Assembly: GCF_044704955.1 (NCBI RefSeq)
Contig: NC_091990.1
Span: 156,612,001 to 156,676,000 of the forward strand
Source: Pristiophorus japonicus
Taxonomy: Eukaryota
DNA: 64,000 nt
Reading direction: 5' to 3'
The notes below the pieces were generated by a model. It made no database searches. It saw only the letters and a list, made by a program, of their open reading frames with translations, and was not told the DNA's origin. This document shows, one piece after another, positions 532 through 64,000 of this stretch (its first letter is position 1; every line of letters starts with the position of its first letter). The position numbers and the translations under genes were made by a program.

Positions 532-1602
532 GGGCCCAAGTTTCCACAAGAAAAAAAACGGGCGCCCCTCCGAGCTGGGCGCCCGTTTTTCGCGCCTAAA
601 ACACGCCTAAAAAAATTCTCGGTATTCTCCACCGACTTACAGGTCCTGTGGCACTCGGCGCAGCCAGCACGAGCTGTGGGGTGGCGGAGCCTTGTCCCTG
701 CGCTGAAAACAGTGCCGGGACCTCTGCACATGCGCGCTACAGTCGGCACGCAAGTGCAGTAGCTCCAGGCGCCGAACTGTGTGGGAGGGGCCCGAAGCAC
801 GCAGCCCCTAGCCCTGGCCCAATGGCCTCACTGGAGCTGTGTGAATGAGGCTCCTCCCACGGCCAGCTCCTGCTCCCCGCCCGACCAGACCCGACCCCCG
901 CTCCCCCCCCGACACCCGTTCCTCTTCCCCGACCCCCCCTCTCTTCCCTCCCCTCCCCTCCCTCCCTCCCTCTCCCTCCCTCCCTCTCTCTCCTCCCTCC
1001 CCTCTCTCTCCTCCCTCCCCTCTCTCCTCCCTCTTTCCCTCCCCCTCTCCCTCTCCCTCCCTCTCCCCTTCTCTCTCTCCCCTCTCTCCCTCTCTCTCTC
1101 TCTCTCCCTCCCTCTCTCGCTCAGCGGCACGAACAGCTGCAGAATTCTCCCTGGCTGAAGCACTTTCACACAGGTAGGAAGATGGTTTATTTAATCTTTT
1201 CTTGGCTTATAATTGTTTATTCAGGTTGGATTTATTTGTAGAAGTATAAATAAGGATTTATTGTCGAATTTAATGAGTTCCCTTCCCCCCCACCTCGTTC
1301 TGGGTGCCTAATTTGTAACCTGCGCCTGATTTTTTAATGTGTAGAACAGGTTTTTTCAAAAATCTTCACTGGCGCCATTCTACTTTAGTTTGGAGTACAT
1401 TTTCACTGTGGAAACTTTCAAATCAGGCGTCAGTGGCCGGACACGCCCCCTTTTGAAGAAAAAATTCTGTTCTAAACTAGAACTGTTCTACCTGACTAGA
1501 ACTGCAGAAAAAAAAATGTGGAGAATTGCGATTTCTAAAATAGTCCGTTCTCCACCAGTTGCTCCTAAAAATCAGGCGCGAATCATGTGGAAACTTGGGC
1601 CC
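532..1602 (+). mobile_element. PIF/Harbinger-type non-autonomous element (MITE), copy 1
   Basis: 17-bp perfect TIR GGGCCCAAGTTTCCACA; 3-bp TSD ATA (529-531 / 1603-1605); internal CT-rich tract. Confidence 0.9.
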
Positions 1603-2286: not shown

Positions 2287-3660
2287 GGGCCCAAGTTTCC
2301 ACACAATAAAAAACGGGCGCCCCTCCAAGCTGGGCGCCCGTTTTTCGCGTCACAAAGTGCGCCTAAAAAAACCCTCCGTATTCTCCACCTCCCTGCAGGT
2401 CCTCTGGCCCTCGGCGTGGCGCAGCAGGAGCTGTAGGGGGCGGAGCCAGGTTCCTGCACTGAAAACAGTGCCGGGACCTCTGCACATGCGCGCTACAGTG
2501 GGCACGCAAGTGCAGTAGCTCCAGGCGCCTGAAACTGTGTGGGAGGGGACCGAAGCACGCAGCCCCTAGCCCTGGCCGAATGGCCTCACTGGGGCTGCGT
2601 GAATAAGGCTCCTCCCATGGCCAGCTCCTGCTGCCTGCCGACTCCCGCTCCTGCTTTCCCCCCCACCCCCCCCCTCCCCCTGGACCCAACCCGACCCATC
2701 TGCCGCTGTCGCTGCCGCTCCTGCTTCCCCCCCGGACCGGACTCGACCCGACCCGACCCGCCTGTCGCTGCCGCTCCTGCTCCTGCTTCTCCCCCGCCCC
2801 CCCCCGGGACCGGACCCAACTCGACCCGTCTGCGTCTGCCGCTCCCGCTCCCACCCGACTCGACCCGACTCTACTCCCGCCCCCCGCCCCCGCCCCCGGA
2901 CTGGATCCGACCTGACCTCCCCCTCCCCGACCTCCCTCCCCCCCCCAACCTCCCTCCCCCCCCTCCCCGACCTGACCTCCCTCTCTCTCCCTCCCTCCCT
3001 CTCTCTCCCTCCCTCTCCCTCTCTCTCCCTCTCCCCCCCCCCCACCCCGCTGACCCGAACCGAACCTCTCTCCCCGACCCGACCCAATGCCACCTACCTC
3101 TGGTGCTGGGGTCGGGCCCTGCCCGAAATCTCGGGCCCGGCCCATTCAGCCTTCGGTCCCGATGGCAAACCGCTTCCTAAAGGCCTGCCTGAAGAACTTT
3201 CACACAGGTAGGAACATGGTTTATTTAATCTTTTCTTTGCTTATAAATTTTTATTCAGGTTGGATTTATTTGTATAATATTTGTATAAGTATAACTAAGG
3301 ATTTATTGTAGAATTTAATGACTTCCCTTCCCCCCCTCCCCCCCTCGTTCCCTACCCCTAATTTGTAACCTACGCCTGATTTTTTAATGTGTAGAACAAG
3401 TTTTTTCAGTTCTACAAAAATCTTCACTTGCTCCATTCTAAGTTAGTTTGGAGTACGTTTTCACTGTGGAAACTTTGAAATCAGGCGTCAGTGGCCGGGC
3501 ACGCCCCCTTTTGAAGAAAACATTCTGTTCTAAAGTGGAATTGTTCTAACTGACTAGAACTGCAGAAAAAAAAATGTAAAGAATTGCGATTTCTAAGATA
3601 GTCCGTTCTCCACCAGTTGCTCCTAAAAATCAGGCGCAAATCATGTAGAAACTTGGGCCC
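2287..3660 (+). mobile_element. PIF/Harbinger-type MITE, copy 2 (same family)
   Basis: TIR GGGCCCAAGTTTC; TSD AAT (2284-2286 / 3661-3663); arms nearly identical to copy 1, longer C-rich middle. Confidence 0.9.
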
Positions 3661-5583: not shown

Positions 5584-7491
5584 GGCCCGGAATTTTCCGT
5601 CAGTGGCGAAGGAACGGCATTCGCCATTCACTACGCGGGCAGTTGCCCACAATGTTTTTGTGGGCTTTAGAGCGCAGACCTGCTCTAATTCAACATCTGT
5701 TTCAGCCCGGTGCCCACTACAGGGGATCTGTGGTGTCTGTGAGCAGGTAAGAAACAGCAAGGCTCTTCAATCAATCAGGTTGAAGAAGCCTCACTGAGAC
5801 TCGCGGAGTCAAAACCAGGAACTATAAAGCAAGAAATATAAATTAGATTTAAATGATGTAATGCAAAATAAAGGCCCCAAGTTTCGGCCCGCGCCGAAAA
5901 TGCCGCACCTCCGAGCTGGACGCCTGTTCTTCGCGCCTAAAAGTGCGCTAGAAAAAAACTTTGATATTCTCCGGCTCCTCGGAGCTCGATCTCAGCTTGG
6001 CGCGGCGCGCTCTTCACAGCGGGGGGGCGGAGCCAAACACTCGCGCCAATTCTGTAAGTAGTGGGGGGCGGGTTCAGTTTAAATGAGCCAACGTGGTGCT
6101 GGCAACCCTGCGCGTGCGCGTTGGAGCGTGCGCGCATGCGCAGTGTCAAACAAACATTGGCACTCGGCCATTTTTAAAAGGACTCGTCGAGCCACTGACG
6201 CCGCCCCTTAAGCGTGGCCGAATGGCCTCAGCCCCCTTGAAAATCTGCGTGCGTCTGGTGTTGATCCTTCGGCTGCCAGCCAGCCACTGACGCCGCTCCT
6301 ATCCCATGGCCGAATGGCCTCAACCCCCTTGAAAAGCTGCGTGCCTCCGATGTTGATCCTTCGGCTGCCGGACAGCCACGAACAGAATGAAGGCCTGCCT
6401 GCAGCACAGCAGCTCAGCTCGAAGGCTGCTTGCTGCCGCTGTTGGGGCTGCCGTCGAGACACTGACGCCACACCCCTGCCTGTCTCCAACATGAAAGGCC
6501 TGCCTGAAGCACAGCAGCTCGAAGGCTGCTGATGTTTCACACAGGTAGGAACATGGTTTATTTAATCTTTTTTTTTGCTTATAAATTTTTATTCAGGTTG
6601 GATTTATTTGTATAATATTTGTATAAGTATAACTAAGGATTGATTGTAGAATTTAATGACTTCTCTTCCCCCCCCCTCCCCCCCCACCTCGTTCCCTACG
6701 CCTAATTTGTAACCTGCGCCTGATTTTCTAAAGTGTAGACAAGGTTTTTTCGAGCGTACAAAAATCTTCACTTACTCCATTCTAAGTTAGTTTGGAGTAA
6801 GTTTTCACTGCCGAAACTTTGAAAACAGGCGTAAGTGGCCGGACACGCCCCCTTTTGAAAAAAAAATTCTGTTCCAAAGTGAAACTGTTCTAACTGACTA
6901 GAACTGGAGCAAACTAAATGCCGAGAATTTGAATTTCTAAGATACTCCGTTCTACACCAGTTGCTCCAAAAAATCAGGAGCAACTGAGGCCGAAACTTGG
7001 CCTAAAGATTGGGAAATACAGATTGGTTTAAGTGAGACAAAATAGACAAGATAGAAAAAGTTTTTTAAAATACTAATTTTTTATTTTTTTAAACCTCCAA
7101 CACTAATTTTCTTCTTAGGGAATGCGAGTACACACTTGAACAATTAAATTTTCAGTGCCAGAGTGGTTTTTAAGCAGTAATTCTCACTTATCATACTGTT
7201 AAAAACTCATTCCCTCCTGAATGCACCAGCCCTAACTTTTTCAACTGTTTTTCGTGCGGAACTAATAGGCAAGTACCCCAAGTTCAGTGCTGAGTCTATC
7301 GGCAAGGGCTGCAACACCACATCCTGTGGAGGAATGGGCTATCTCTGACAGAAACCTCTGGATTTGCACGTTTAATTGCGTATGTTGGGACAACAGCAGT
7401 TGCAGTCTGATTTACCACGTTATAACAGTGAGTGTTGTTAGCCTCACCGATATTGCGCCTGTTTGGCACCCAAACCTAAAGTCTCCAGGCC
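5584..7491. mobile_element. Older Harbinger-like MITE split by copy 3
   Basis: Degenerate TIRs GGCCCGGAATTTT / AAAGTCTCCAGGCC; interior related to 1-460. Confidence 0.5.
5873..7002 (+). mobile_element. PIF/Harbinger-type MITE, copy 3 (related subfamily), nested in an older MITE
   Basis: TIR GGCCCCAAGTTTCGGCC / GGCCGAAACTTGGCC; right arm homologous to copies 1-2; TAAA on both flanks (exact TSD ambiguous). Confidence 0.8.
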
Positions 7492-11483: not shown

Positions 11484-14076
11484 ATAGAAACATAGAAACA
11501 TAGAAAATAGGTGCAGCAGCAGGCCATTCGGCCCTTCAAGCCTGCACCAATATTCAATAAGATCATGGCTGATCATGCAACTTCAGTACCCCACTCCTGC
11601 CTTCTCTCCATACTCCCTGATCCCTTTAGCCGTAAGGGCCACATCTAACTCCCTTTTGAATATATCCAACGAACTGGACTCAACAACTTTCTGTAGTAGA
11701 AAATTTCACTGGTTCACAATTCTCTGGGTGAAAAAGTTTCTCCTCATCTCGGTCCTATATGGCTTACCCCTTATCCTTAGACTGTGACCCCAGTTCTGGA
11801 ATTCCCTAACTTCGGGAACATTCTTCCTGCATCTAACCTGTCCAATCCTGTCAGAAGTTTATATGCTTCTATGAGATCCCCTCTCATTCTTCTAAATTCC
11901 TGTGAATATAAGCCTAGTCGATCCAGTCTTTCTTCATATGTCAGTCCTGCCATCCCGGGAATCAGTCTGGTGAACCTTCGCTGCACTCCCTCAATAGCAA
12001 GAATGTCCTTCCTCAGATTAGGAGACCAAAACTGCACACAATACTCAAGGTGGGGTCTCACCAAGGCCCTGCACAACTGCAACAAGTCCTCCCTGCTCCG
12101 ATACTCAAATCCTCTTGCTATGAAGGCCAACATGCCATTTGATTTCTTAACTGCCTGCTGTACCTGCATGCCTACTTCAAATGACTGATGTACCATGACA
12201 CCCAGGTCTCGTTGCACCTCCCCTTTTACTAATCTGTCACCATTCAGATAATAATCTGCCTTCCTGTTTTTGCCAACAAAGTGGATAACCTCACACTTAT
12301 CCACATTATACTGCATCTGCCATGCATTTGCCCACTCACCTAACCTGTCCAAGTTACCCTGCAGCCTCTTAGCATCCTCCTCACAGCTCACACTGCCACC
12401 TAGCTTAGTGTCATCTGCAAACTTGGAGATATTACATTCAATTCCTTCATCTAAATCATTAATATATATTGTAAATAGCTGGGGTCCCAGCACTGAACTT
12501 TGTGGTATCCCACTAGTCACTGCCTGCCATTCTGAAAAGGACCCGTTTATTCCCACTCTTTGCTTCCTGTCTGCGAACCAGTTCTCTATCCACGTCAATA
12601 CATTACCCTCAATCCCATGTGCCTTAATTGTGCACACTAATCTCTTGTGTGGGACCTTGTCAAAAGTCTTTTGAAAATCCAAATACACCACATCCACTGG
12701 TTCTCCCTTATCCATTCTACTAGTTACATCCTCAAAAAACTCTAGAAGATTTGTCAAGCGTGATTTCCCTTTCATAAATCCATGCTGACTTGGACCTATC
12801 CTGTCACTGCTTTCCAAATGCGCTGCTATTACATCTTTACTAATTGATTCCAGCATTTCCCCCACTACTGATGTCAGGCTAACCGGTCTTTAATTCCCTG
12901 TTTTCTGTCTCCCTCCTTTTTTAAAAAGTGGGGTTACATTAGCTACCCTCCAATCCATCGGAACTGACCCAGAGTCCATGGAATGTTGGAAAATGACCAC
13001 CAATGCATCTACTATTTCTAGGGCCACTTCCTTCAGTACTCTGGGAATGCAGACTATCAGGCCCTGGGGATTTATCGGCCTTCAATCCCATCAATTTCCC
13101 TAACACCATTTCCTGACTAATAAGGATTTCCCTCAGTTCCCTCAGTTCCACCTTCTCTAGTATTTTCGGGAGGTTATTTGTGTCTTCCTTAGTGAAGACA
13201 GAACAAAAGTATTTGTTCAATTGGTCTGCCATTTCTTTGTTCCCCATTATGAATTCTTCTGATTCTGACTGCAAGGGACCTACATTAGTCTTCACTAATC
13301 TTTTTCTCTTCACATATCTATAGAAGCTTTTGCAGTCAGTTTTTATGTTCCCTGCAAGCTTACTCTCATATTCTATTTCCCCCCTCCTAATTAGACCCTT
13401 AGTGCTCCTCTGTTGAATTCTAAATTTCTCCCAGTCCTCAGGTTTGCTGCTTTTTCTGGCCAATTTATATGCCTCTTCCTTGGATTTAACACTTTCCCTA
13501 ATTTCCCTTGTTAGCCAACGTTGAGCCACCTTCCCCGTTTTATTTTTACGCCAGATAGGGATGTACAATTGTTGTAGTTCATCCATGTGCTCTTTAAATG
13601 TCTGCCATTGCCTATCTAACATCAACCCTTTAAGTATCATTCTCCAAGCTATCCTAGCCAATTCATGTCTCATAACATCGAAGTTACCTTTCTTTATTTC
13701 AGGACCCTAGTCTCTGAATTAACTGTGTCACTCTCCATCTTAATTAAGAATTCTACCATTTTATGATCACTCTTCCCCAAGGGGCCTCGCATGACAAGAT
13801 TGCTAATTAATCCTCTCTCATTACACATGACCCAATCTAGGATGTCCTGCTCTCTAGTTGGTTCCTCGACATATTGGTCTAGAAAACCATCCCTTATACA
13901 CTCCAGGAAATCTTCCTCCACAGTATTGCTACCAATTTGGTTAGCCCAATCTATATATAGATTAAAGTCACCCACGATAACTGCTATACCTTTATTGCAC
14001 ACATACCTAATTTCCTGTTTGATGCCATCCCGAACCTCACTACTACTGTTTAGTGGTCTGTACACAACTCCCACTA
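11484..14076 (-). mobile_element. CR1 LINE, 5'-truncated ORF2 (endonuclease C-terminus + RT)
   Basis: ORFs 13694..14083 (VVYRP, GDFN, SDH), 12939..13673, 11777..12865 (YLDFQK, PQ.S.LGP, FADD); (GTTTCTAT)n tail. Confidence 0.95.
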
Positions 14077-20535: not shown

Positions 20536-22635
20536 ATAGAAACATAGAAAATAGGTGCAGGAGTAGGCCATTCGGTCCTTCAAGCCTGCACCACCATTCA
20601 ATAAGATCATGGCTGATCATTCCCTCAGTACCCCTTTCCCGTTTTCTCTCCATACCCCTTGATCCCCTGAGCCATAAGGGCCATATCTAACTCCCTCTTG
20701 AATATATCCAATGAACTGGCATCAACAACTCTCGGCGGTAGGGAATTCCACAGGTGAACAACTCTCTGAGTGAAGAAGTTTCTTCTCATCTCAGTCCTAA
20801 ATGGCTTACCCCTTATCCTAAGACTGTGTCCCCTGGTTCTGGACTTCCCCAACATTGGGAACATTCTTCCCGCATCTAACCTGTCCAGTTCCGTCAGATT
20901 TTGGACGTTTCTATGAGATCCCCTCTCATCCTTCTAAACTCCAGTGAATAAAGGCCCAGTTGATCCAGTCTCTCCTCATATGTCAGTCCAGCCATCCCTG
21001 GAATCAGCCTGGTGAACCTTCGCTGCACTCCCTCAATAGCAAGAACGCCCTTCCTCAGATTAGGAGACCAAAACTGAACACAATATTCCAGGTGAGGTCT
21101 CACCAAGGCCGTGTACAACTGCAGTAAGACCTCCCTGCTCCTATACTCAAATCCCCTAGCTATGAAGGCCAACATACCATTTGCCTTCTTCACCACCTGC
21201 TGTACCTGCATGCCAACTTTCAATGACTGATGAACCATGACACCCAGGTCTCGTTGCACCTCCCCTTTTCCTAATCTGCCGCCATTCAGATAATATTCTG
21301 CCTTCGTGTTTTTGCCCCCAAAGTGAATAACCTCACATTTATCCACATTATACTGCATCTGCCATGCATTTGCCCACTCACTTAGCCTGTCCAAGTCACC
21401 CTGCAGCCTCTTAGCATCCTCCTCGCAGCTCACACCACCACCCAGCTTAGTGTCATCTGCAAACTTGTAGATATTACACTCAATTCCTTCATCTAAATCA
21501 TTCATGTATATTGTAAAAAGTTGGAGTCCCAGCACTGAGCCCTGCGGCACTCCACTAGTCACTGCCTGCCATTCTGAAAAGGACCCGTTTATCCCGACTC
21601 TCTGCTTCCTATCTGCCAATTAGTTCTCTATCCATGTCAGTACATTACCCCCAATAGCATGTACTTTGATTTTGCACACCAATCTCTTGTGTGGGACCTT
21701 GTCAAAAACCTTTTGAAAATCCAAATACACCACATCCACTGGTTCTCCCTTGTCCACTCTGCTAGTTACATCCTTAAAAAATTCCAGAAGATTCGTCAAG
21801 CATGATTTCCCTTTCATAAATCCATGCTGACTTGGACCGATCCTATCACTGCTTTCCAAATGCGCTGCTATTTCAGCCTTAATGATTGATTCCAACATTT
21901 TCCCCACTACTGATGTCAGGCTAACTGGTCTATAATTACCCGTTTTCTCTCTCCCTCCTTTTTTAAAAAGTGGTGTTACTTTAGTTACCCTCCAGTCCAT
22001 AGGAACTGATCCAGAGTCGATAGACTGTTGGAAAATGATCACCAATGCAGCTACTATTTCTAGGGCCACTTCCTTAAGTACCCTGGGATGCAGACTATCA
22101 GGCCCCAGGGATTTATCGGCCTTCAATCCCATCAATTTCCCGCCTAATAAGGATATCCTTCAGTTCCTCCTTCTCACCAGACCCTCGGTCCCCTAGTACA
22201 TCTGGAAGGTTATTTGTGTCTTCCTTCGTGAAGACAGAACAAAATTATTTGTTCCATTGGTCCGCCATTTCTTTGTTCCCCATTATAAATTCACCTGAAT
22301 CCAACTGCAAGGGACCTACATTTGTTTTCACTAATCTTTTTCTCTTCACATATCTATAGAAGCTTTTCCAGTCATTTTTTATGTTCCCAGCAAGCTTCCT
22401 CTATTACTCTATTTTCCCCCTCTTAATTAAACCCTTATTCCTCCTCTGCTGAATTTTAAATTTCTCCCAGTCCTCAGGTTTGCTGCTTTTTCTGGCCAAT
22501 TTATATGCCTCTTCCTTGAATTTAACATTATCCTTAATTTCCCTTGTTAGCCACGGTTGAGCCACCTTCCCCGTTTTATTTTTACTCCAGACAGGGATAT
22601 ACAATTGTTGAAGTTCACCCATGTGATCTTTAAAT
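20536..22635 (-). mobile_element. CR1 LINE, 5'-truncated, inserted in the L2 tail
   Basis: ORFs 22404..22622, 21620..22135, 20894..21619, 20625..20864; (GTTTCTAT)n tail. Confidence 0.95.
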
Positions 22636-43897: not shown

Positions 43898-45660
43898 ATG
43901 GAGGGCATGGAGGAGGTGAGAGGTGGAGGAGGCTGGTGAGGACAATGATTTGGGTGAGGTTGGAGAGGAAGTGGAGATGGGAGGTAAGAAAAGAGCCAGG
44001 CAGTTCTCGGATGAGGCAAATGCTGCCCTCCTACAGGAGGTCGAGTTACGTTGGGCCCAATTGACCTTGGGTGGGCGTGGGAAGCCAACCCCGAAGGTAT
44101 ACCAGAAGATCTGGGCCGAAATTGCTGAGGTGGTGTCGTTGGTGACACATGAGGTCCGTGAGGGCAACCAGTGCCGCAAGCACTGGAACGACCGTGTCAG
44201 TTCTGGCAGAGTAAGTATTACATGTACTTATATATTTATATAATTGGAATTGTAAGTGTAATGAGGCAATAAATTCAGATCTGATGTATTGCAGTTAGAC
44301 CGGTAACGTTTTACTCAAATCCTACGTTTCCGGTGTACGTGTTTAGCTTAATAATGATAATGATAATAATAATCGTAATAATAATATTAGTAATATTAAA
44401 TTATAACATAGTAATGTGCTATATGTGTTATATCAGTATCTGTGACAGTACCTAGCAATGATCTTACACAATGATCTTATGCCATATCGTACTGTTGTCA
44501 CCTTTTGCAGAAGAAGCTTTCGAAGAATAGGGCTGAGCAGCGGCGATGGGTGGCGACCCACCAGTGATATGTGAGCTTACAGACATCGAGGAGCGGGCGC
44601 TAGCAGTAGGGGCATCCACAACCGGTCGGCCATTCGTGCAGCAGCAGAACCTGTTGTTATGCCACGTGAGTAAAGTATAAACCATTGTGTGATGTAAAGT
44701 CAATAGATGCCACACCCACTCATATCCGTATAATATATGATTGATGATTGATGAACGTGTTATGTAATTAATGATGAGTTCATGAAAATCATTGTAATGC
44801 AGATTTTGATTATGTTCATTAAATGTGATGTCTTTGATTATTTTTACAGCGGTAGTGCTGCTCTCGTGCATATGCTGTGTGTAGTGTTTGAATTCCCCTG
44901 TGACCCCAGCACCCTCTTCTCCTCTAATTACCTCATTTATGTTTTCTAGCTCAGCCAAGAGCGCAGTACCGAGGCAAGGTGCGGATCCGTTGGCAGCAGT
45001 GGATCGTGCTTCTGGTGTTGAGAAGCCCCGCATATTGCCCATTGAGCTGCAGGTTATCCTGTCCACTGAGGACAGTGAGTAGCTGGAGGAGGAGCCTGCA
45101 GCAGCAACAGCAAGAGCAACCACACCACTTATTGCAGTGTTACTGCGGCCATGTTTTCCTTGCCGTGGAGGTAGCGGGCCCAAGCACTTTGCCACAGGGC
45201 ATCCCAAATGTCTCCATGCCGGCGCCGACCCCACAGAGGATGGTTCGGCGCAGTAGGACTGCTCCACGATTGGTAGATCTCAGCGGGGACAAGGTAAATT
45301 TGTCCAGGAGGATTATTGAGATTGGTCATCAGCTCCTCCAGGCAATGGGGGGGTCTATCCGAACAGATGGCCACACTATCCGCAAATATGAACGAGAAAA
45401 TTACGCGGATAGCGGTAGCCCTGGAGGTGACAGCCAAGAACACTAGTGCCGCACCCCCATTGCCAATGACACATGCGAGCCAGGAGGAAGCTGTTGCTTC
45501 TAGCTTGGAGGATGTTTCCTCTATGGGAACGTCCTCTCCATTATCCGGTCAAACAGTGGATCTGCCGTCATCCATCCCAATGAAGCAGTGCTTGAGGAGC
45601 ACTGCGGCAAAGCGGCTTGGAGTCAGGAGGGGAAGGGGAAGGGGTGAAAAAGAAACTGAG
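43898..45660 (+). pseudogene. Harbinger Myb/SANT-like DNA-binding protein gene, three exons, frameshifted
   Basis: RARQFSDEANAALL...KIWAEIAEVV...REGNQCRKHWND; GTAAGT donor 44211, TTTTGCAG acceptor 44510 (KKLSKNRAEQRR), GTGAGT donor 44666, TTTTCTAG acceptor 44949. Confidence 0.8.
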
Positions 45661-50659: not shown

Positions 50660-51872
50660 GCAATGTTACTTCCAGCAAAGTGTTCATTTATGAGTTGCTG
50701 ACGTAACAGTCTTGCAGCTATGTAGCCACCACGGGCCCTTTCCTGCAGTCTAAGGGAGGGGCGGGGGCATGGCTTCATTGTCAGCCTGATTGTCTGCCCC
50801 GAGGGTCATCATCTACCTTCTCCTCTTCCTCTCCTAAGGTGAACCAGCAGTCCCTTCTGGCAATTCCTACCCCCTCCTGATAGCCAAGTTATACAGCAAG
50901 CAGCACACCACCATGAATTGAGCTACCTGCTCAGGGTGATATTGCAACTCGCCTCCTGAGTGGTCCAGGCATCTAAAGCGCTGCTTAAGCACTCCAATTG
51001 TATTTTTGATGATATTGCGTGTGGCTATGTGGCTTTTGTTGTATCGCTTCTCAGCTTCTGTCTGGATCTTACGCAGGGGGGTCATCAGCCAGGTGGCGAG
51101 TTCATATCCTTTGTCACCAAGCTTCCAGCATTGACCTTGTGGCTGACTGGTAAACATGTCAGATACAGCGCTCTCACACAGGATGTGAGCATCATGGATG
51201 TTGCCTGGAAATTTGGCATTTACTGCCATTATTATTTGTTTGTGGTCGACAAGGAGTTGCACACTCAGGGAGTGGAATCCCTTTTTGTTCTGAAAAACCT
51301 CTGCATCCTAAAAAGGTGCTTGCATGGCGATGTGTGTACAGTCTATTGCTCCCTGCACCTTGGGGAAGTTTGCTATTCTCGAGAATCCTAGAGCCCTCTC
51401 AGTCTGTGCCTCCCTTGTCATAGGGAAACTTATAAAATCCATCCTGCGTGCGTAAAGGGCTTTAGTCACCTGTCGAATGCAGCAATGTGTGACGTGCTGA
51501 GAGATAACGCAAATGTCACCAGCTGAGGCCTGAAAGGAGCCCAATGCATAGAAGGAAAGTGCCACAGTTACCTTGACCTCAACAGACAGTGCGGTCCTGA
51601 TGGTGCTATTAAGCTGTAGATCTCCCCTAATGAGCTGGCATATCTCACTGATGATCTCCTTCCGGAAGCGCAGTCTCCAAGCCACGTGTTCTCGGACAAG
51701 ATCAGTTAAGACCGCTTCTTCCTGTAAGTGCGTGGGTGTAAGTTCTCCTCCCACTCCTCAGTCTGCCACCTCTTTGATTGGGCACATAATGCTCATCAAT
51801 ATACCTTGTCCCATCTCTAGTCTGCAGCATGTGAGTAGTCATCAATACAGGCTGAGAAATTACAGACCCCAT
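50660..51872 (-). pseudogene. Harbinger (HARBI1-like, DDE_Tnp_4) transposase, disrupted
   Basis: ORFs 51308..51754 and 50867..51262 are one frame split by a TAG at 51308-51310; GAIDCTH, NKKGFHS, HDA, GDKGY, LKQRFRCL motifs. Confidence 0.9.
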
Positions 51873-52997: not shown

Positions 52998-55900
52998 CCC
53001 AACTTTAACAAAGGAGACTACAAAGGTATGAAGGCAGAGTTGGCGAAAGTGTACTGGGAAAATAAATTAAGGTGTGGGACAATTGATGAGCAGTGGCAGA
53101 CATTTGAGGAGATATTTCATAACTCTCAACAAAAATATATTCCAATGAGAAGGAAAGACAGTAAGAGAAGGAATAACCATCTGTGGCTAACTAAGGAAAT
53201 AAGGGATGGTATCAAATTAAAAACAAGGGCATACAAAGTGGCCAAGACTAGTGGGAGGCCGCAGGATTGGGAACATTTTAAAAGCCAGCAAAGAATGACT
53301 AAAGAAATAATAAAGAGAGGGAAGATAGATTATGAATGCAAACTAGCACGAAAAATTAAAAAAATAGTAAGTTTCTACAGGTACATAAAAAGAAAAGAGT
53401 GACTAAAATAAATGTTGGTCCCTCAGAGGATGAGACTGGGTAATTAATAATGGGGAACAGGGTAATGGCAGAGACTTTGAACAAATATTTTGGATCAGTC
53501 TTCATAGTAGAAGACACTAAAAACACTCCTATAGTGGATAATCAAGGGGCTATAGGGAGGGAGGAACTTAATACAATCACTATTACTAAATAAGTAGTAC
53601 TCAGTAAAATAATGGGACTAAAGGCAGACAAGTCTCCTGGACCTGATGGTATGCATCTTAGCGTCTTAAAAGAAGTGGCTGCAGAGATAGAAGATGCATT
53701 CGTTGTAATCTACCAAAATTCCCTGAAGTCTGGGGAGGTCCCAGCGGATTGGAAAACTCCAAATGTAATGCCCGTATTTAAAAAAAGGAGGCAGACAGAA
53801 AGCAGGAAGCTATAGACCAGGTAGCCTAACATCTGTCGTTGGGAAAATGCTGGAGTCCATTATTAAGGAAGCAGTAGCAGGACATTTGGAAAAGCATGAT
53901 TCAATCAAGCAGAGTCAACATGGTTTTATGAAAGGGAAATCATGTTTGACAAATTTACTGGAGTTCTTTGAGGATGTAACAAGCAGGGTGGATATAGAAA
54001 CATAGAAACGTAGAAAATAGGAGCAGTAGTAGGCCATTCGGCCCTTCGAGTCTGCACCGCCATTCAATATGCATGGCTGATCCTCTATCTCAACACCATA
54101 TTCCCGCTTTTTCCCCATACCCCTTGATGCCTTTTGTTTCTAGAAATCTAACCATCTCCCTCTTAAATATATTCAGTGACTTGGCCTCCACAGCCTTCTA
54201 TGGTAGAGAATTCCACAGATTCAACACTTTCTGAGTGAAAACATTTCTCCTCATCTCAGTCCTAAATTTCCTACCCCATATCCTGAGACTGTGACCCCTT
54301 GTTCTAGACTTCCCAGCCAGGGGAAACATCCTCCCTGCATCCAGTCTATCCAACCCAGTCAGAATTGTATATGTTTCAATGAGATGTCGTCTCATTCTTC
54401 TAAACTCTAGTGAATACAGGCTTAGTCGACCCAATCTCTCCTCGTATGACAGTCCTGCCATCCCAGGAATCAGTCTGGTGAACTTTCGTTGCACTCCTTC
54501 TATGACAAGTATATCCTTTCTTAGGTAAGGAGACCAAAACTGCACACAATACTCCAGGTGTGGCCTCACCAAGGCCCTGTATAACTGTAGTAAGACATCC
54601 ATGCCCCTGTACTCAAATCGTCTTGCAATGAAGGCCAACATGCCATTTGCCTTCCTAACTGCTTGCTGCACCTGCATGTTTGCTTTCAATGACTGGTGTT
54701 CAAGGACACCTCTGTACATCGACACTTCCCAAGCCATCACCATTTAAATAATATTTTGTCCTTATGTTTTTCCTACAAAAGTGGATAACTTCTCATTTAT
54801 CCATGTTATACGGCATCTGCCATGTGTTTGCCCACTCACTCAACCTATCTAAATCACCTTGCAGCGTCTTTGCATCCTCCTCACAACTTACAATCCCACT
54901 TAGTTTTGTGTCATCAGCAAACTTGGAAATATTACATTTGGTTCCCTCATCTAAATCATTTATATATATATTGTGAATAGCTGGGGCCCAAGCACTGATT
55001 GGTCCCTGTGGTACCCCATTAGTCACTGCCTGCCACCCTGAAAAAGACCCATTTATTCCTACTTTCTGATTCTTGTCAGTTAACCAATTTTCAATCCATG
55101 CCAATAAGGGATGTGGTGTATTTGAATTTCCAGAAGGCATTCGATAAGGTGCCACATAAAAGGTTACTGCACAGAATAAACTTCCCGGGGTTGGGAGTAA
55201 TATATTAGCATGGATAGAGAACTAACAGAAAACAGAGAGTTGGGATAAATGGGTCATTTTCCGTTTGGCAAACGATAACAAGTGGGGTGCCACAGGGATC
55301 GGTGCTGGGGCCTCAACTATTTACAATCTATATTAATGACTTAGAAGAAGGGACCGAATGTAATGTAGCCAAGTTTGCTGATGATACAAAAATGGTGGGA
55401 GAGTAAATTGTGAGGAGATCACAAGATATCTACAAAGGAATATAGATAGGCTAAGTGAGTGGGCAAAAATTTGGTAGATGGAGTATAATATGTGAAAATG
55501 TACGGTTATCCACTTTGGCAGAAAAAATAGAAAAGCAAATTATAATTTAAATGGAGAAAAATTGCAGAGTGCTGCAGTACAGAGGAACCTGGGGGTCTTT
55601 GTGCATGAAACACAAAAAGGTAGTATGCAAGTACAGCAAGTAATCAGGAAGGCAAATGGAATGGTGGCCTTTATTGCAAGGGGGGGTGGAGTATAAAAGT
55701 AGAGAAGTCCTGCTACAACTGTGCAGGGTATTGGTGAGGCCGCACCTAAAGTACTGCATACAGTTTTAGTTTCTGTATTTAAGGAAGGATATACTTGCAT
55801 TGGAGGCTGTTCAGATAAGGTTCACTAGGTTGATTCCGGAGATGAGGGGCTTGACTTATGAAGATAGGTTGAGTCGGTTAGGTCGATACTCATTGGAGTT

Positions 55901-57167: not shown

Positions 57168-59722
57168 GGTAATCTACATATTGATTGGGCTAACCAAACT
57201 GGTAGAAATATTGAGGAGGAGGATTTCCTGGAGTGTATAAGGGATGGTTTTCTAGACCAATATGTCGAAGAACCAACTAGAGAGCAGGCCATCCTAGACT
57301 GGGTCTTGTGTAACGAGAGAGGATTAATTAGCAATCTGGTCATGCGGGGCCCCTTGGGGAAGTGACCATAATATGGTAAAATTCTTCATTAAGATGGAGA
57401 GTGACACAATTAATTCAGAGACTAGGGTCCTGAACTTAAAGAAAGGAAACTTCAATGGTATGAGACATGAATTGGCTAGGATAGACTGGAGAATGATACT
57501 TAAAAGGTTGACGGTGCATAGGTAATGGCAGACATTTAAATATCACATGGATGAATACAACAATTGTACATCCCTGTCTGGCATAAGAATAAAAAAGGGA
57601 AGGTGGCTCAACTGTGGCTAACAAGGGAAATTAGGGAAAGTGTTAAATCCAAATAAGAGGTATATAAATTGGCCAGAAAAAGCAGCAAACCTGAGGACTG
57701 GGAGAAATTTAGAATTCAGCAGAGGAGGACTAAGGGTTTCATTAGGAGGGGGAAAATAGAGTATGAGAGTAAGCTTGCAGGGAACATAAAATCTGACTGC
57801 AAAAGCTTCTATAAAATATGTGAAGAGAAAAAGATTAGTGAAGACTAATGTAGGTCCCTTGCAGTCAGAATCAGGTGAATTCATAATGGGGAACAAGGAA
57901 ATGGCAGACCAATTGAAACATAGAAACGTAGAAACATAGAAAATACGTGCAGGAATAGGCCAATCGGCCCCTCGAGCTTGCACCATCATTCAATAAGATC
58001 ATGGCTGATCATCACCTCAGTACCCCTTTCCTGCTTTCTCTCCATACCCCTTGAGACCCTTAGCCATAAGGACCATATCTAACTCCCTAATTGAACAAAT
58101 ACTTTGGTTCTCTCTTCACTAAAGATGACACAAATAACCTCCCAAAAATACTAGGGGACTGAGGGTCTAGCGAGTAGGGGGAACTGAGGGAAATCCTTAT
58201 TAGTCAAGAAATGGTGTTAGGGAAATTGAAGGAACTAAAGGCCGATAAATCCCAAGGGCTGATAGTCTGCATCCCAGAGTACTGAAGGAAGTGGCCTTAG
58301 AAATAGTAGATGCATTGGTGGTCATTTTCCAACATTCCATGGACTCTGGTTCAGTTCCTATGGATTGGAGGATAGCTTATGTAACCCAACTTTTAAAAAA
58401 AGGAGGGAGAGCAAAAACAGGGAATTATATGCTGGAATCAATTATTAAAGATGTAATAGCGGCGCATTTGGAAAGTAGTGACAGGATCGGTCCAAGTCAG
58501 CAGGGATTTATGAAAGGGAAATCTTGCTTGACAAATCTTCTGGAATTTTTTGAGGATGTAACTGGTAGAGTGGACAAGGGAGAACCAGTGGATGTGATGT
58601 ATTTGGACTTTCAAAAGGCTTTTGACAAGGTCCCACACAAGAGATTAGTGTGCAAAATTAAGGCACATAGTACTGGGGGTAATGTATTGATGTGGATAGA
58701 GAACTGGTTGGCAGACAGGAAACAAAGAGTGGGAATAAACGGGTCCTTTTCTGAATGGCAGACAGTGACTAGTGGGGTGCCACAGGGTTCAGTGCTGGGA
58801 CCCCGGCTATTTACAATATACAGTAATGATTTAAATGAAGGAATTGAATGTAATATCTCGAAGTTCGCAGATGACACTAAGCTGGGTGGCAGTGCGAGCT
58901 GCGAGGAGGATGCTAGGAGGCTGCAGGTGGGCTTGAACAGGTTAGGTAAATGGGCAAATGCATGGCGGATGCAGTATAATGTGGATAAGTGTGAGGTTAT
59001 CCACTTTGGTGGCAAATACAGGAAGGCAGATTATTATCTGAATGGTGACAGATTAGTAAAAGGGGAGGTGCAACGAGACCTGGGTGTCATGATACATCAA
59101 TCATTGAAGGTAGGCATGCAGGTACAGCAGGCAGTAAAGAAAGCAAGTGGTATGCTGGCCTTCATAGCGAGGGGATTTGAGTATAGGAGCAAGGAGGCCT
59201 TACTGCAGTTGTACCGGGCCTTAGTGAGACCACACCTTGAGTACTGTGTGCAGTTTTGTACTCCTAATCTGAGGAAGGATGTTCTTGCTATTGAGGGAGT
59301 GCAGTGAAGGTTCACCAGACTGATTCCCGGGATGGCAGAACTGACATATGAAGAAAGACTGGATCGACTAGGCTTATATTCACTAGAATTTAGAAGAATG
59401 AGAGGAGATCTATTAGAAACATATAAAATTCTGATGGGATTGGACAGGTTAGATGCAGGAAGAATGTTCCCGATGTTGGGGAAGTCCAGAAGCAGAGGTC
59501 ACAGTCTAACGATAAGGGGTAAGCCATTTAGGACCGAGATGAGGAGAAACTTTTTCATTCAGAGAATTGTGAACCTATGGAATTCTCTACCATAGAAAGT
59601 TGTTAAGGCCAGTTCTTTAGATACATTCAAAAGGGAGTTAGATGTGGCCCTTATGGCTAAAGTGATCAAGGTGTATGGAGAGAAAGCAGGATTGGGGTAC
59701 TGAAGTTGCATGAGCAGCCATG
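57168..59722 (+). mobile_element. CR1 LINE, 5'-truncated
   Basis: ORFs 58291..59307 and 59332..59595; 3' end cut within the 3'UTR by the next copy. Confidence 0.95.
57918..58088 (-). mobile_element. 171-bp CR1 3'UTR inserted antisense, with 7-bp TSD
   Basis: AATTGAA duplicated at 57911-57917 and 58089-58095; ATAGAAAC tail. Confidence 0.85.
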
Positions 59723-61391
59723 ACATTCTGGAAATACTAGGGGACCGAGGTTCTAGCGAGAAGGAGGAATTGAAGGAAATCCTTATTAGTCAGCAAATTG
59801 TGTTCGGGAAATTGATGGGATTGAAGGCCGATAAATCCCTGGGGCCCGATAGTTTGCATCCCAGAGTAATTAAGGAAGTGGTCCTAGAAATAGTGGATGC
59901 ATTGGTGATCATTTTCCAACAGTCTATTGACTCTGGATCAGTTCCTATGGACTGGAGGGTAACTAATGTAACACCACTTTTTAAAAAAAGAGGCAGAAAG
60001 AAAACAGGGAATTATAGACCATTTAGCCTGACATCAGTAGTGGGGAAAATGTTGGAATCAATTATTAAGGATGAAATAGCAGCGCATTTGGAAAGCAATG
60101 ACAGGATCGGTCCAAGTCAGCATAGATTTATGAAAGGGAAATCATGCTTGACAAATCTTCTAGAATTTTTTGAGGATGTGACTAGTAGAGTGGACAAGGG
60201 AAAACCAGTGGATGTGGTGTATTTGGACTTTCAAAAGGTTTTTGACAAGGTCCCAAACAAGAGATTGGTTTGCAAAATTAAAGCACATTGTATTGGAGGT
60301 AATGTACTGAAGTGGATAGAGAACTGGTTGGCAGACAGGAAGCAGAGAGTCAGAATGGCAGGCAGTGACTAGTGGGGTGCCGCAGGTTTCAGTGTTGGGA
60401 CCCCAGCTATTTACAATATACATCAATGATTTAGATGATGGAATTGAGAGTAATATCTCCAAGTTTGCAGATGACACTAAACTGGGTGGCGGTGTGAGCT
60501 GTGAGGAGAATGCTAAGAGGCTGCAGGATGACTTGGACAGGTTAGGTGAGTGGGCAAATGCATGGCAGATGTAGTATAATGTGGATAAATGTGAGGTTAA
60601 CCACTTTGGTGGCAAAAACACGGAGGCAGAATATAATCTGAATGGCAGCAGATTAGGAAACTTAGGCAACGAGAACCGGGTGTCATGGTACACAGTCATT
60701 GAAGGTTGGCATGCAGGTGCAGCAGGCGGTGAAGAAGGTAAATGGCATGTTGGCCTTCATAGCTAGGGAATTTGAGTATAGGAGCAGGGAGGTCTTGCTG
60801 CAGCTGTACAGGGCTTTGGTTCGGCCTCACCTGGAATATTGTGTTCAGTTTTGGTTTCCTAATCTGAGGAAGGACGTTCTTGCTATTGAGGAAGTGCAGC
60901 GAAGGTTCACCAGATTAATTCCCGGGATGGCAGGACTGACATATGAGGAGAGACTGGATCGACTTGGCCTGTATTTACTGGAGTTTAGAAGAATGAGAGG
61001 GGATCTCATGGAAACATATAAAATTCTGATGGGACTGGACAGGTTAGATGCAGGAAGAATGTTCCCAATGTTGGAGGAGTCCAGAACCAGGGGTCACAGT
61101 CTAAGGATAAGGGGTAAGCCATTTAGGACCGAGATGAGGAAAAACTTCTTCACTCAGGGTTGTTAACCTGTGGAATTCTCTTCTGCAGAGATTTGTTGAT
61201 GCCAGTTTGTTAGATATATTCAAGAGGGAGTTGGATATGGCCCTTACGGCTAAAGGGATCAAGGGGTATGGAGAGAAAGCAGGAAAGGGGTACTGAGATG
61301 AATAATCAGCCATGGTCTTATTGAATGGTGGTGCAGGCTCGAAGGGCTGAATGTTCTATTCCTGCACCTATTTTCTATGTTTCTATGTTTC
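59723..61391 (+). mobile_element. CR1 LINE, 5'-truncated, fused in tandem to the previous copy
   Basis: ORFs 59710..60372, 60365..60574, 60699..61166; (TTTCTATG)n tail. Confidence 0.95.
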
Positions 61392-62165: not shown

Positions 62166-62613
62166 GCTGAAATTACATCAATATTGAAAATCTGAATATC
62201 ACGACGACTAATTGTTTAAAAATTGTTCAACCTATCCTGTAATGCTGAATAAATTAGTTTACAATTACAGTAATGGACATCAAAACATAACTTTCACTAA
62301 AAGTGTTCCAGGCGCGCAAGATTCAATTTAAGCATTGCTCACAAAACTAGACATGATTGTGATTTATGCACATACAAGTATGTTTTGCTTTTTATGTGGG
62401 ATTCTAGTTTTTGGCACATTTTCTGAGTACTGATTACAAATTTATGATGATTTATTGCCAGAGTTGGTACATGTACAGTTTTGGATTAGGGAGTCTAGTT
62501 TTTTGATCAGGTTGGTCAGAATATTCTAAAATGTAAACTTTGCACCAAAATGTTCTCTTTTTAAGTAATTTATTTCTCCCATTTAATTCTATGTTGCAAC
62601 AGTTATTTACTGT

Positions 62614-64000
62614 GGGCTCAAAATTGGCCAGGAGTTGCTCCATTTTCTTTGGAGTAACTTGATTTTTCTGCAGTGTCTTAAAAATCCACATTTTACACAT
62701 TCAATTTGCGCCAGTGTAAGTGAGTTCGTTAAGATTTTTTTTCAAGTTTTTTTTTCAAAAGGGGGCGTTACCAGCCACTTACGACCATTTTGGCCATTTA
62801 AGCCACTTTGGCTAGCTAATAGTTACTCCAAACTAACTTAGGCTAGTGTATGTGGCCACTTGTGGCCGCTTGTGAAAATCCTTGTGGAGAGTTAAGAAAT
62901 CACCGTAGGTAGTGGGTACATTGGAGGCCAGCAGAACTTAATGACTTGACTAAAGAATGTGAATAGGATCAAAGAGCTATACAGGACATCATATGACAAA
63001 CTTCGCAAAGTTAATTTACTATACAACAGAAGCATTCATGGAAGCTTAAACTACAAAAATAAAAGTAGTAAAGAGACAAAACATATTTACGTGATTTTTT
63101 CAAAATATCCAAATAAAAAATAGAAGTAAGTCCTACCCTACCTTCATCTGTAGCCCGGGAACATTACAGATTAATATAAACACTGACAGCAGCCAGTGAC
63201 AATCAATCAAACCAAGTGAAGATCCAGAATGGGGATTGCTTCTGAATGAATCCTCCCAGCGACGCAGCAAGTCCAGATTCCAGTCCCAGGGATCATCACT
63301 TTGGGATCAGCCTCAGGCTTGGGCTGATGAGTTTGAGGATGATTCTCCTTTTTCAGCAATGTTTGCTGGGCTGTAACCAGATTTCTTCTCTCCTCCTCTC
63401 TTCTTCCACCTAACGGTACCGATGACCAGAGCAATCAGGGCGACGGCAGCAATCACAATTCCAACAGTCAAAATGAGATTTGTTCCCTTTGGAGATCCGG
63501 GAGTCACTCGGAACGTCCCGTCCCAGTCTTGGTTCTTCACTCCTATGTTGTCACTCTGCTCATACTGACAGGAATAGGTGGCTCCATCCTCGGACTCGAT
63601 CTCAGCCCATCTTGTCAGCTGGTAGATTCCATCGTGGTTGGGCAGGATGCCATTGGATTCCGTGTCCGTGATCGGCTCGTGATTTCTCAGGAGGGTGACT
63701 TTGGTATCACGAGGGTAAAAGCCCGTGACGAGGCAGGAGAGTTAGGTCGGTTTATGGCCACTCGGCCTGGGATAGGGACGGGACACACACAGAGATGCTG
63801 GGGGCGAGGAACTATTGCGCATGCGCGCACACTCCAACGCGCATGTGCAGACATCCTGGCACTGTTTTCAGCGCGGGACACTGACTCCGCCCCCGACTCA
63901 ACTGGCCACGCTGCGCGAAGACCCGAGAGAGGCCAGACAGCGGCCAAAATCGGGACGTCTTTTTTTAGGCACGTTTGGAAACGTAGAAAAGTTGTGCAAA
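62614..64000 (-). mobile_element. Harbinger-type non-autonomous element (diverged relative of copies 1-3, inverted) carrying captured gene cargo; far TIR just beyond the window
   Basis: End GGGCTCAAAATTGGCC; shares AGTTGCTCC, CAAAAGGGGGCGT, TTACTCCAAACTAACTTA and GCGCTGAAAACAGTGCC blocks with copies 1-3. Confidence 0.8.
63313..63741 (-). pseudogene. Intronless MHC class I heavy-chain fragment (alpha3 C1-set domain, connecting peptide, TM, cytoplasmic tail), 142 open codons, no ATG
   Basis: LSCLVTGFYPRDTKVTLLRNHEPITDTESNGILPNHDGIYQLTRWAEIESEDGATYSCQYEQSDNIGVKNQDWDGTFRVTPGSPKGTNLILTVGIVIAAVALIALVIGTVRWKKRGGEKKSGYSPANIAEKGESSSNSSAQA*. Confidence 0.85.

Follow-up and report, generated by a model that had tools for sequence, protein, structure and literature searches.

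How does a piece of an immune gene come to lie inside a small DNA transposon? The question is raised by a stretch of 64,000 nucleotides from the sawshark Pristiophorus japonicus (contig NC_091990.1, positions 156,612,001 to 156,676,000), hereafter called the window, whose own numbering is used below. Towards the end of the window, on the minus strand, a fragment of a major histocompatibility complex (MHC) class I gene is enclosed on both sides by the arms of a miniature inverted-repeat transposable element (MITE). This fragment, the cargo, had been noticed in an earlier inspection of the letters alone (the sequence-only reading). Taken as a whole, the locus is probably a Pack-TIR, that is, a non-autonomous element with terminal inverted repeats (TIRs) and a host-gene fragment in its centre, derived from a single capture that was followed by transposition and neutral decay.

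Class I identity of the fragment

Translation of the window yields a stop-free minus-strand frame of 142 codons, from 63741 to 63316, which closes with TGA at 63315-63313 and has an in-frame TAA (63744-63742) directly upstream. The encoded 142 residues include a C1-set immunoglobulin (Ig) domain (Pfam, E=2.8e-12), which covers profile positions 18-82 of 86 and is truncated at its N-terminus, the initial strand or strands being absent. The cysteines C3 and C58 are spaced by 55 residues. C-terminal to the Ig part there are a hydrophobic helix, the basic motif WKKR and a tail ending in GESSSNSSAQA. The frame can be divided into the second half of alpha3, the connecting peptide, the transmembrane (TM) helix and the cytoplasmic tail. 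The closest solved structures are alpha3 domains of class I, MR1 and CD1 molecules, for instance 9qwj_B (a beta2-microglobulin-CD1c fusion, 1.6e-13) and 6lup_A (an MHC class I protein, 3.8e-13).

The best matches in a HMMER scan of 1.84 billion representative proteins were shark class I proteins, aligned up to their C-termini, and a second protein search added two proteins of P. japonicus itself, here called P0159 and P0160. P0159, a singleton of 355 aa with the accession UniRef100_UPI00398F448E, is 81.7% identical to the frame over all 142 residues, to its C-terminus. The identity is 76.8% with P0160, which represents a cluster of six near-identical proteins of 355, 380 or 385 aa, and also 76.8% with Q8HWH7 of Squalus acanthias, 75% with P0157 of Heptranchias perlo and 64% with P0001 of Heterodontus francisci. 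The sequence-only reading of the fragment as alpha3, TM helix, tail and 3′ untranslated region (UTR) of an MHC class I gene is thus upheld by the Pfam domain, the solved relatives and the identity with P0159. It had named best matches other than MHC class I as grounds for abandoning this view; the closest relatives are class I proteins.

A maximum-likelihood tree built from the 150 C-terminal residues groups the fragment with P0159 as its sister (93/85), the P0160 cluster being the next branch (84/74). Residues S49, K85 and K131 of the fragment are common only to P0159, and in the TM helix the fragment keeps the state of other species at places where P0159 has diverged. These shared residues, together with the older states of the TM helix, indicate that the fragment descends from an ancestor of the P0159 gene. 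P0159 has the MHC class I protein 6lup_A as its best solved match (6.7e-99) and, by our reading, retains the classical peptide-terminus-binding residues, hence it would be a class I molecule of the classical type.

The cargo shares with the classical-type shark class I molecules (P0159, Q8HWH7, 6lup_A) the alpha3 signature (CLVTGFYP, ILPNHDG.YQ, YSCQYEQS), the TM helix, WKKRGGEKKSGYS and the GESSSNSSAQA tail, with identities of 77-82%. Unlike them, it lacks the leader, alpha1 and alpha2, its alpha3 is incomplete and a nonsense codon is present. It corresponds to residues ~210-355 of the parent, so that the first ~25 residues of alpha3 are also missing, and upstream of its start there is MITE sequence instead of alpha1 and alpha2. 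The cargo is a fragment of MHC class I and no gene. Among annotated proteins in the length band of the 142-aa frame, only two relatives were found; since neither of them is from the sawshark, no annotated protein in this band holds another copy of the cargo.

The carrier element and the borders of the cargo

Comparison of 62501-64000 with the window by blastn, followed by a four-way alignment, showed that both flanks of the cargo belong to a repeat family with three further copies, at 532-1602, 2287-3660 and 5873-~7000 (copies A, B and C; the loaded one is copy D), in agreement with the sequence-only reading, which had recognized this MITE at 532, 2287 and 5873. The TIR of the family (GGGCCCAAGTTTCCAC) was matched 6 times in the window, with 0.5 matches expected by chance, and the count of 6 was attained in none of 100 shuffles. 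The target-site duplications (TSDs) of copies A, B and C are of 3 bp and AT-rich. The family is probably of the PIF/Harbinger type, an assignment that rests on the TIR, which we take to be PIF-like, and on the 3-bp TSD. The centre of the element varies, consisting of CT-rich low-complexity sequence in A and B and of something else in C. The CT-rich arrays, at 886-1173 in copy A and 2897-3090 in copy B, occupy the site at which copy D has the MHC cargo; because of this coincidence the middle of the element can be regarded as hypervariable. In copy D, the 3′ TIR matches at 10 of 16 positions by our count and the 5′ end falls past 64000.

The population of such elements was approached through Logan contigs of four public P. 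japonicus runs, aligned to 62600-64000; the kinds of the runs were guessed (X1-X4, "DNA?"; X5, "?"). In each DNA run, 110-163 contigs depart exactly before 62614 into flanks that are mutually unlike (agreement 0.37), indicating that 62614 is the end of a mobile element. The MITE arms reach a summed contig depth of 1e4-1e5.

Cargo-free relatives define the borders. In each DNA run, two to three contigs link 63161 to 63756 through ~24 nt (GGCAGCGGGCCGGCCTGTGCGGTA and variants), and X5 contains one such contig. Since empty relatives are joined in this way, the cargo is 63162-63755, a sequence of 594 nt that replaces ~24 nt of the element; the empty element measures ~860 bp. The junctions postulated in the sequence-only reading do exist, but they lie at 63755/63756 and 63161/63162 rather than at 63741/63742 and ~63141 (14 and 20 nt away, respectively). 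Similarly, the 3′UTR proposed after the stop codon is present, with 151 nt instead of ~170 bp. Once the upstream TAA is reverted, the coding part of the cargo begins with ..K-P-T-Q-L-S-C, and P0159 has IKPTQLSC at this place.

Direct reading of the sequence revealed no poly(A), no tail of a long interspersed nuclear element (LINE) and no duplication bordering the cargo, in line with the earlier statement that neither a poly(A) nor an own TSD is visible around the fragment. A polypyrimidine tract with AG at ~63771 that resembles a splice acceptor was considered as an intron remnant and ruled out; it belongs to the MITE arm and aligns to copies A-C. The features of the locus and of the related copies are collected in Table 1.

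Table 1. Parts of the loaded element and other copies of its family in the window
Feature	Position	Strand	Characteristics
Cargo, 3′UTR part	63162..63312 (151 nt)	-	no poly(A); X5 contig aligns across
Cargo, open frame and TGA	63313..63741	-	second half of alpha3 (C1-set), connecting peptide, TM, tail
Cargo, first 14 nt	63742..63755	-	..K P T, then TAA (63744-63742)
MITE copy D, 3′ arm	62614..63161	-	terminal repeat 62614-62629 (GGGCTCAAAATTGGCC on the + strand), degenerate; outer flank ...ctgt
MITE copy D, 5′ arm	63756..64000, cut by the window end	-	63808-63897 80% identical to 2433-2522 and 680-766
MITE copy A	532..1602	+	perfect TIRs, TSD ATA, CT-rich low-complexity centre, no cargo
MITE copy B	2287..3660	+	TSD AAT, CT-rich centre
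MITE copy C	5873..7000 (end approximate)	+	degenerate TIRs, TSD AAA, different centre

A processed sequence and its parental transcript

The exon structure of class I genes in other sharks can be read from their isoforms. Horn shark isoforms differ in that two blocks are cleanly removed, namely the TM block (ARM..KRR) and GGEYKHSYSSANP (GGE..ANP), and those of the sevengill shark part directly after WKKR and after SGYSPAN. Because the isoforms break at these points, the orthologues of two shark orders contain introns at the limits between alpha3 and TM, between TM and the first cytoplasmic part (cyt1), and between cyt1 and the second cytoplasmic part (cyt2). The equivalents of these exon junctions in the window are ~63522/63521, 63396/63395 and 63360/63359, and the cargo runs uninterrupted across all three. 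Its continuity at three places where the orthologues have introns indicates that the cargo is a processed sequence. On this isoform evidence, the description of the fragment as apparently spliced in the sequence-only reading was correct.

The parental transcript itself is probably represented in X5, a run of another sample and study whose kind is not on record. One X5 contig of 663 nt, with a depth of 935, is 89% identical to 63160-63690 (57 mismatches and 2 gap letters in 531 nt). Where this contig departs from the window, translation gives the P0159 residues G98, V99, A105, V109 and K125, and it extends past 63160 in sequence unlike the MITE. In the DNA runs, P0159-type letters at the TM and tail sites were found in 0-1 contigs. 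X5 would therefore be an RNA run and its 663-nt contig the probable mRNA of P0159. Since this contig continues past 63160, the 151 nt after the stop codon are parental 3′UTR, and the cargo is devoid of the 3′ end of the mRNA. The probable P0159 mRNA reaches past both ends of the cargo, whose coding part shows no indel with respect to it.

Cargo-like contigs in X5 have depths of 3-49, against 935 for the probable P0159 mRNA; by this difference, the parental class I gene appears to be strongly expressed and the cargo copies weakly represented at most. Another X5 contig (774 nt, depth 48.6) has the continuing 3′UTR in common, and its match ends at 63368, near the cyt1-cyt2 junction. This weakly suggests that some gene of the P0159 lineage has an intron at this junction. 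The literature offered nothing relevant on intronless class I genes of sharks, nor on a sawshark genome.

Copies of the loaded element

The cargo is multicopy. In the DNA runs its summed depth is ~200-1200, made up of contigs with depths of 4-22 each and one at ~200, and up to 22 distinct contigs cover one cargo site in a single DNA run. The cargo contigs listed are 82-86% identical to the window, most of them cross at least one of the exon-junction equivalents and the longest cross all three. At 63368/9, 63415/6, 63428/9 and 63449 they read the letter of the window and not that of P0159; these contigs therefore form one family with the cargo of the window and are not copies of the gene. Subsets of shared substitutions point to cargo subfamilies. 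For instance, at 63549 about half of the depth has the letter of the window, and one high-depth contig has the ancestral letter.

Some contigs connect an arm to the cargo across deletions, from 63161 to 63257 (shorter side of 34 letters in X2) or from 63527 to 63761 (shorter side of 44). A copy number calculated from summed contig depth was dropped as too uncertain, the single-copy depth not being known, and the number of distinct contigs is taken as a lower bound. The loaded element seems to exist in many diverged copies, as expected from the proposal in the sequence-only reading that a DNA transposon had moved its cargo.

Rearranged forms of the cargo are also found in the DNA runs. In some contigs 63319-63397, the entire coding part of the cytoplasmic tail, is swapped for 73 other letters; others skip 63311-63360 (the last coding exon) or 63528-63760 (the alpha3 part). 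The ends of the skipped or replaced stretches lie within 1-5 nt of exon-junction equivalents. Such joints may be due to chance, to internal deletions, or to variants of the cargo for which other splice forms or paralogues were the template.

Decay and coding status

The window copy differs by 11% from the parental mRNA and by 14-18% from its sibling copies, a ratio to be expected if the copies decayed neutrally after a burst while the gene evolved more slowly. At 63744 all other contigs (11-15 per DNA run and 4 in X5) read G on the + strand, which gives a CAA codon; the TAA at 63744-63742 is thus a private nonsense mutation of a Gln codon, codon 5 of the cargo. Among the listed differences, the private changes of the window amount to ~9 replacement codons against 4 silent ones by our translation. 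The replacements are T39I, R71Q, G90I, I92T, A109T, V111R, P128I, a change at codon 66 and the Gln-to-stop change. Three of them, T39I (in the invariant DGTYQ motif), G90I and P128I, alter residues that are conserved in all relatives.

The frame could also be a functional or exonised module, either a TM-tail cassette or a truncated class I-like protein, held open by selection. Its 142 open codons without any indel against the parental mRNA would agree with this, as would the finding that an appreciable share of animal Pack-TIRs is transcribed, often as chimeras with the flanks (Tan et al. 2021, PMC8277862). However, the 142-codon frame contains no in-frame ATG, and there is no signal peptide, only half an Ig domain, a nonsense codon at the fifth position and a series of private replacements at residues that all relatives conserve. 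Moreover, after simulated substitution at 7.5% the frame remains stop-free in 31% of trials. With a stop-free probability of ~0.3, which considers substitutions alone, and many copies in the genome to draw from, one open frame is expected by chance. Maintenance by selection was rejected on the grounds of the replacement-rich private changes, the nonsense codon and the likelihood of a chance open frame, and we hold it to be most improbable.

The 142-codon frame is a chance survivor and the window copy codes for nothing usable, since it has no start codon, signal peptide, alpha1 or alpha2 and carries the nonsense mutation. The sequence-only reading had taken the intact frame as a sign of a recent event or of constraint. 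Neither inference is supported, given the divergence among siblings, the private replacements, the nonsense codon, the absence of Met and the chance of remaining stop-free.

Origin of the loaded element

In the origin that we propose, copy D would be one decayed member of a subfamily that carries the cargo, within a non-autonomous TIR transposon of very high abundance, ~860 bp long when empty. An element of this kind would have suffered a break in its variable centre once, in the lineage of the sawshark, and would have been repaired by copying of a template. This repair would have introduced 594 nt of intron-free sequence from the P0159 class I lineage, from the middle of alpha3 to 151 nt into the 3′UTR, in place of ~24 nt of the element. 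The loaded element, now a Pack-TIR, would then have been mobilised in trans and multiplied, its copies later decaying neutrally.

Several observations weigh against this reading. The TSDs ATA, AAT and AAA differ from the TWA that is canonical for PIF/Harbinger elements, and it is their length that fits. No autonomous partner with the same TIRs was found within the window, the rest of the genome not having been searched. The 5′ TIR and the TSD of copy D lie outside the window, hence transposition of this very copy is not demonstrated. Among the contigs listed, none spans from an arm through a full-length cargo; the pieces end at 63160 and 63754, and arm and cargo are bridged in deletion variants only, in one of which the shorter side comprises no more than 29-34 letters. 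Neither copy numbers nor loci can be obtained from Logan contigs, and the kinds of the runs were guessed. Finally, the joints from 63318 to 63398, from 63310 to 63361 and from 63527 to 63761 fall at exon-junction equivalents, which could reflect templating on more than one occasion.

An ordinary LINE-mediated retrocopy of a class I mRNA that landed in a MITE at a single locus would also produce an intron-free and 5′-truncated sequence, as many retrocopies are, and LINE reverse-transcriptase open reading frames (ORFs), recognized by eye, are plentiful in the window. It is hard to reconcile with the borders of the cargo, at which poly(A), LINE tail and TSD are absent, with the missing mRNA 3′ end indicated by the X5 contig that continues past 63160, or with the MITE, in which ~24 nt were replaced and the element was not simply split. 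The cargo is also multicopy and arm-linked variants of it exist. This explanation is largely refuted and was rejected for these reasons; we give it hardly any credence. There remains the nature of the template copied in the capture. A gap in the MITE could have been filled directly from spliced class I mRNA or cDNA, for instance by a LINE reverse transcriptase, with no genomic retrocopy involved and with later spread of the loaded element. In favour of this, the cargo corresponds to the interior of a spliced transcript and lacks poly(A), and the tree places it with P0159 and not with the P0160 cluster of six copies. The high abundance of the probable P0159 mRNA in X5 also agrees with it, and the 774-nt contig hints at an intron near the cyt1-cyt2 junction in this lineage. 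However, the formation of Pack-TIRs in animals has been modelled as DNA template switching, either by gap filling or by FoSTeST (Tan et al. 2021, PMC8277862). For this reason we lean slightly towards a DNA template, namely an intronless copy (retrocopy or retrogene) of the P0159 lineage, and regard direct copying from RNA as the less likely route. The proposal of the sequence-only reading that a MITE captured an RNA-derived piece of an immune gene is accordingly retained as regards the capture of an intron-free piece, an RNA template being somewhat less likely than a DNA one.

The most far-reaching version, in which a piece of class I mRNA was copied from RNA or cDNA into an excision gap in the shark germ line and amplified to hundreds of copies, is improbable. 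If true, it would constitute by far the largest animal Pack-TIR family, and its sense and antisense copies would provide a permanent supply of small RNAs, or of exons for TM and tail, with relationship to the classical class I gene.

Comparison with other gene-capturing elements

In plants, TIR transposons are well known to capture gene fragments. Among vertebrates, Helitrons have captured and amplified gene fragments in vespertilionid bats. In these bats, as in the sawshark, a host-gene fragment was amplified to many copies by a DNA transposon, but Helitrons acquire it by rolling-circle read-through of flanking DNA, whereas here the centre of a TIR element was replaced.

Animal Pack-TIRs (PMC8277862) and plant Pack-MULE or Pack-TYPE elements also resemble the sawshark element. 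They are likewise non-autonomous TIR elements with a host-gene fragment in the centre, they have cargo-free relatives, their internal sequence was replaced by gap filling or template switching, and the cargo is non-functional. Both an identifiable parent (P0159) and a cargo-free form of the element (joints from 63161 to 63756 in all four runs) are found in the present case. A survey of 100 animal genomes detected 370 Pack-TIRs, 87% of them belonging to hAT or Tc/Mariner (Tan et al. 2021, Nat Commun 12:4280, PMC8277862). Only 4 of the 370 were multicopy, the described example having three copies. Unlike those surveyed, the sawshark element has a PIF/Harbinger-like carrier, an intron-free cargo derived from an MHC gene, at least ~20 sequence variants and a cartilaginous fish as host.

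A parallel to an intron-free cargo in a TIR element is provided by MER20, a transposon in which a retrogene of ARF6 was captured (mentioned in Tan et al. 2021, PMC8277862); there, capture and retroposition are similarly hard to distinguish. However, the ARF6 case involves a nearly complete retrogene, while the sawshark cargo is an internal piece of mRNA without either end. Because both mRNA ends are lacking, simple retroposition is less likely for the sawshark cargo. As a Pack-TIR, the sawshark element would thus belong to a known kind. It is unusual in its Harbinger-like carrier, in its copy number and in having a cargo of immune-gene sequence free of introns.

Surroundings of the locus

The examined part of the window is occupied mostly by transposable elements. 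LINE reverse-transcriptase ORFs and a long terminal repeat (LTR) element at ~46-50 kb were recognized by eye. Copies of one LINE family with reverse-transcriptase ORFs, in both orientations and 88-93% alike, lie at 11777-13673, 20894-22135, 54198-55155 and 58291-61166; the likeness of these copies shows that the region harboured an active source of reverse transcriptase until recently. The sequence-only reading had placed the fragment upstream of a neuronal gene. No such gene was found in the examined part of the window, which ends at 64000, and in a scan of the ORFs at 22.7-46 kb the only Pfam match was an ORF with a Myb/SANT-like domain.

Autonomous Harbingers typically encode a DDE_Tnp_4 transposase and a Myb-like protein. 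The window contains a remnant of a Harbinger-type transposase at 50867-51754 (minus strand; DDE_Tnp_4 at 50867-51262, E=9.5e-25), and the Myb/SANT-like ORF, at 43923-44243 (plus strand; Myb_DNA-bind_5, 1e-05), is ~7 kb from it. The two may have been separated by the LTR retroelement, which extends over ~46.3-50.2 kb. A scan of the window for the TIR of the MHC-carrying MITE found none beside either of them.

Association of partial class I copies with mobile elements may not be restricted to the sawshark. In P0005 of Heterodontus francisci (XP_067865201.1) an N-terminus resembling LINE ORF2 (..NVKGNPKAFFRHLN) is followed directly by alpha3, TM and tail of a class I molecule of the same lineage. 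This gene model suggests that partial class I copies are associated with retroelements in another shark.

Significance

The copy in the window is dead and therefore has no bearing on how antigen presentation is understood. With an MHC class I cargo that is both multicopy and free of introns, in the genome of a cartilaginous fish, the element would count as an unusually successful Pack-TIR for an animal, and it offers a natural experiment on whether spliced sequence reaches transposons via RNA or via retrocopies. The history of the P0159 and P0160 class I genes can also be dated with the loaded MITE as a marker. In practical terms, look-alikes of alpha3, TM and tail, dispersed over the genome by the dozen or more, will interfere with counts of MHC genes, with the design of primers and with annotation in sawsharks, and the same is possible in related squalomorph sharks.

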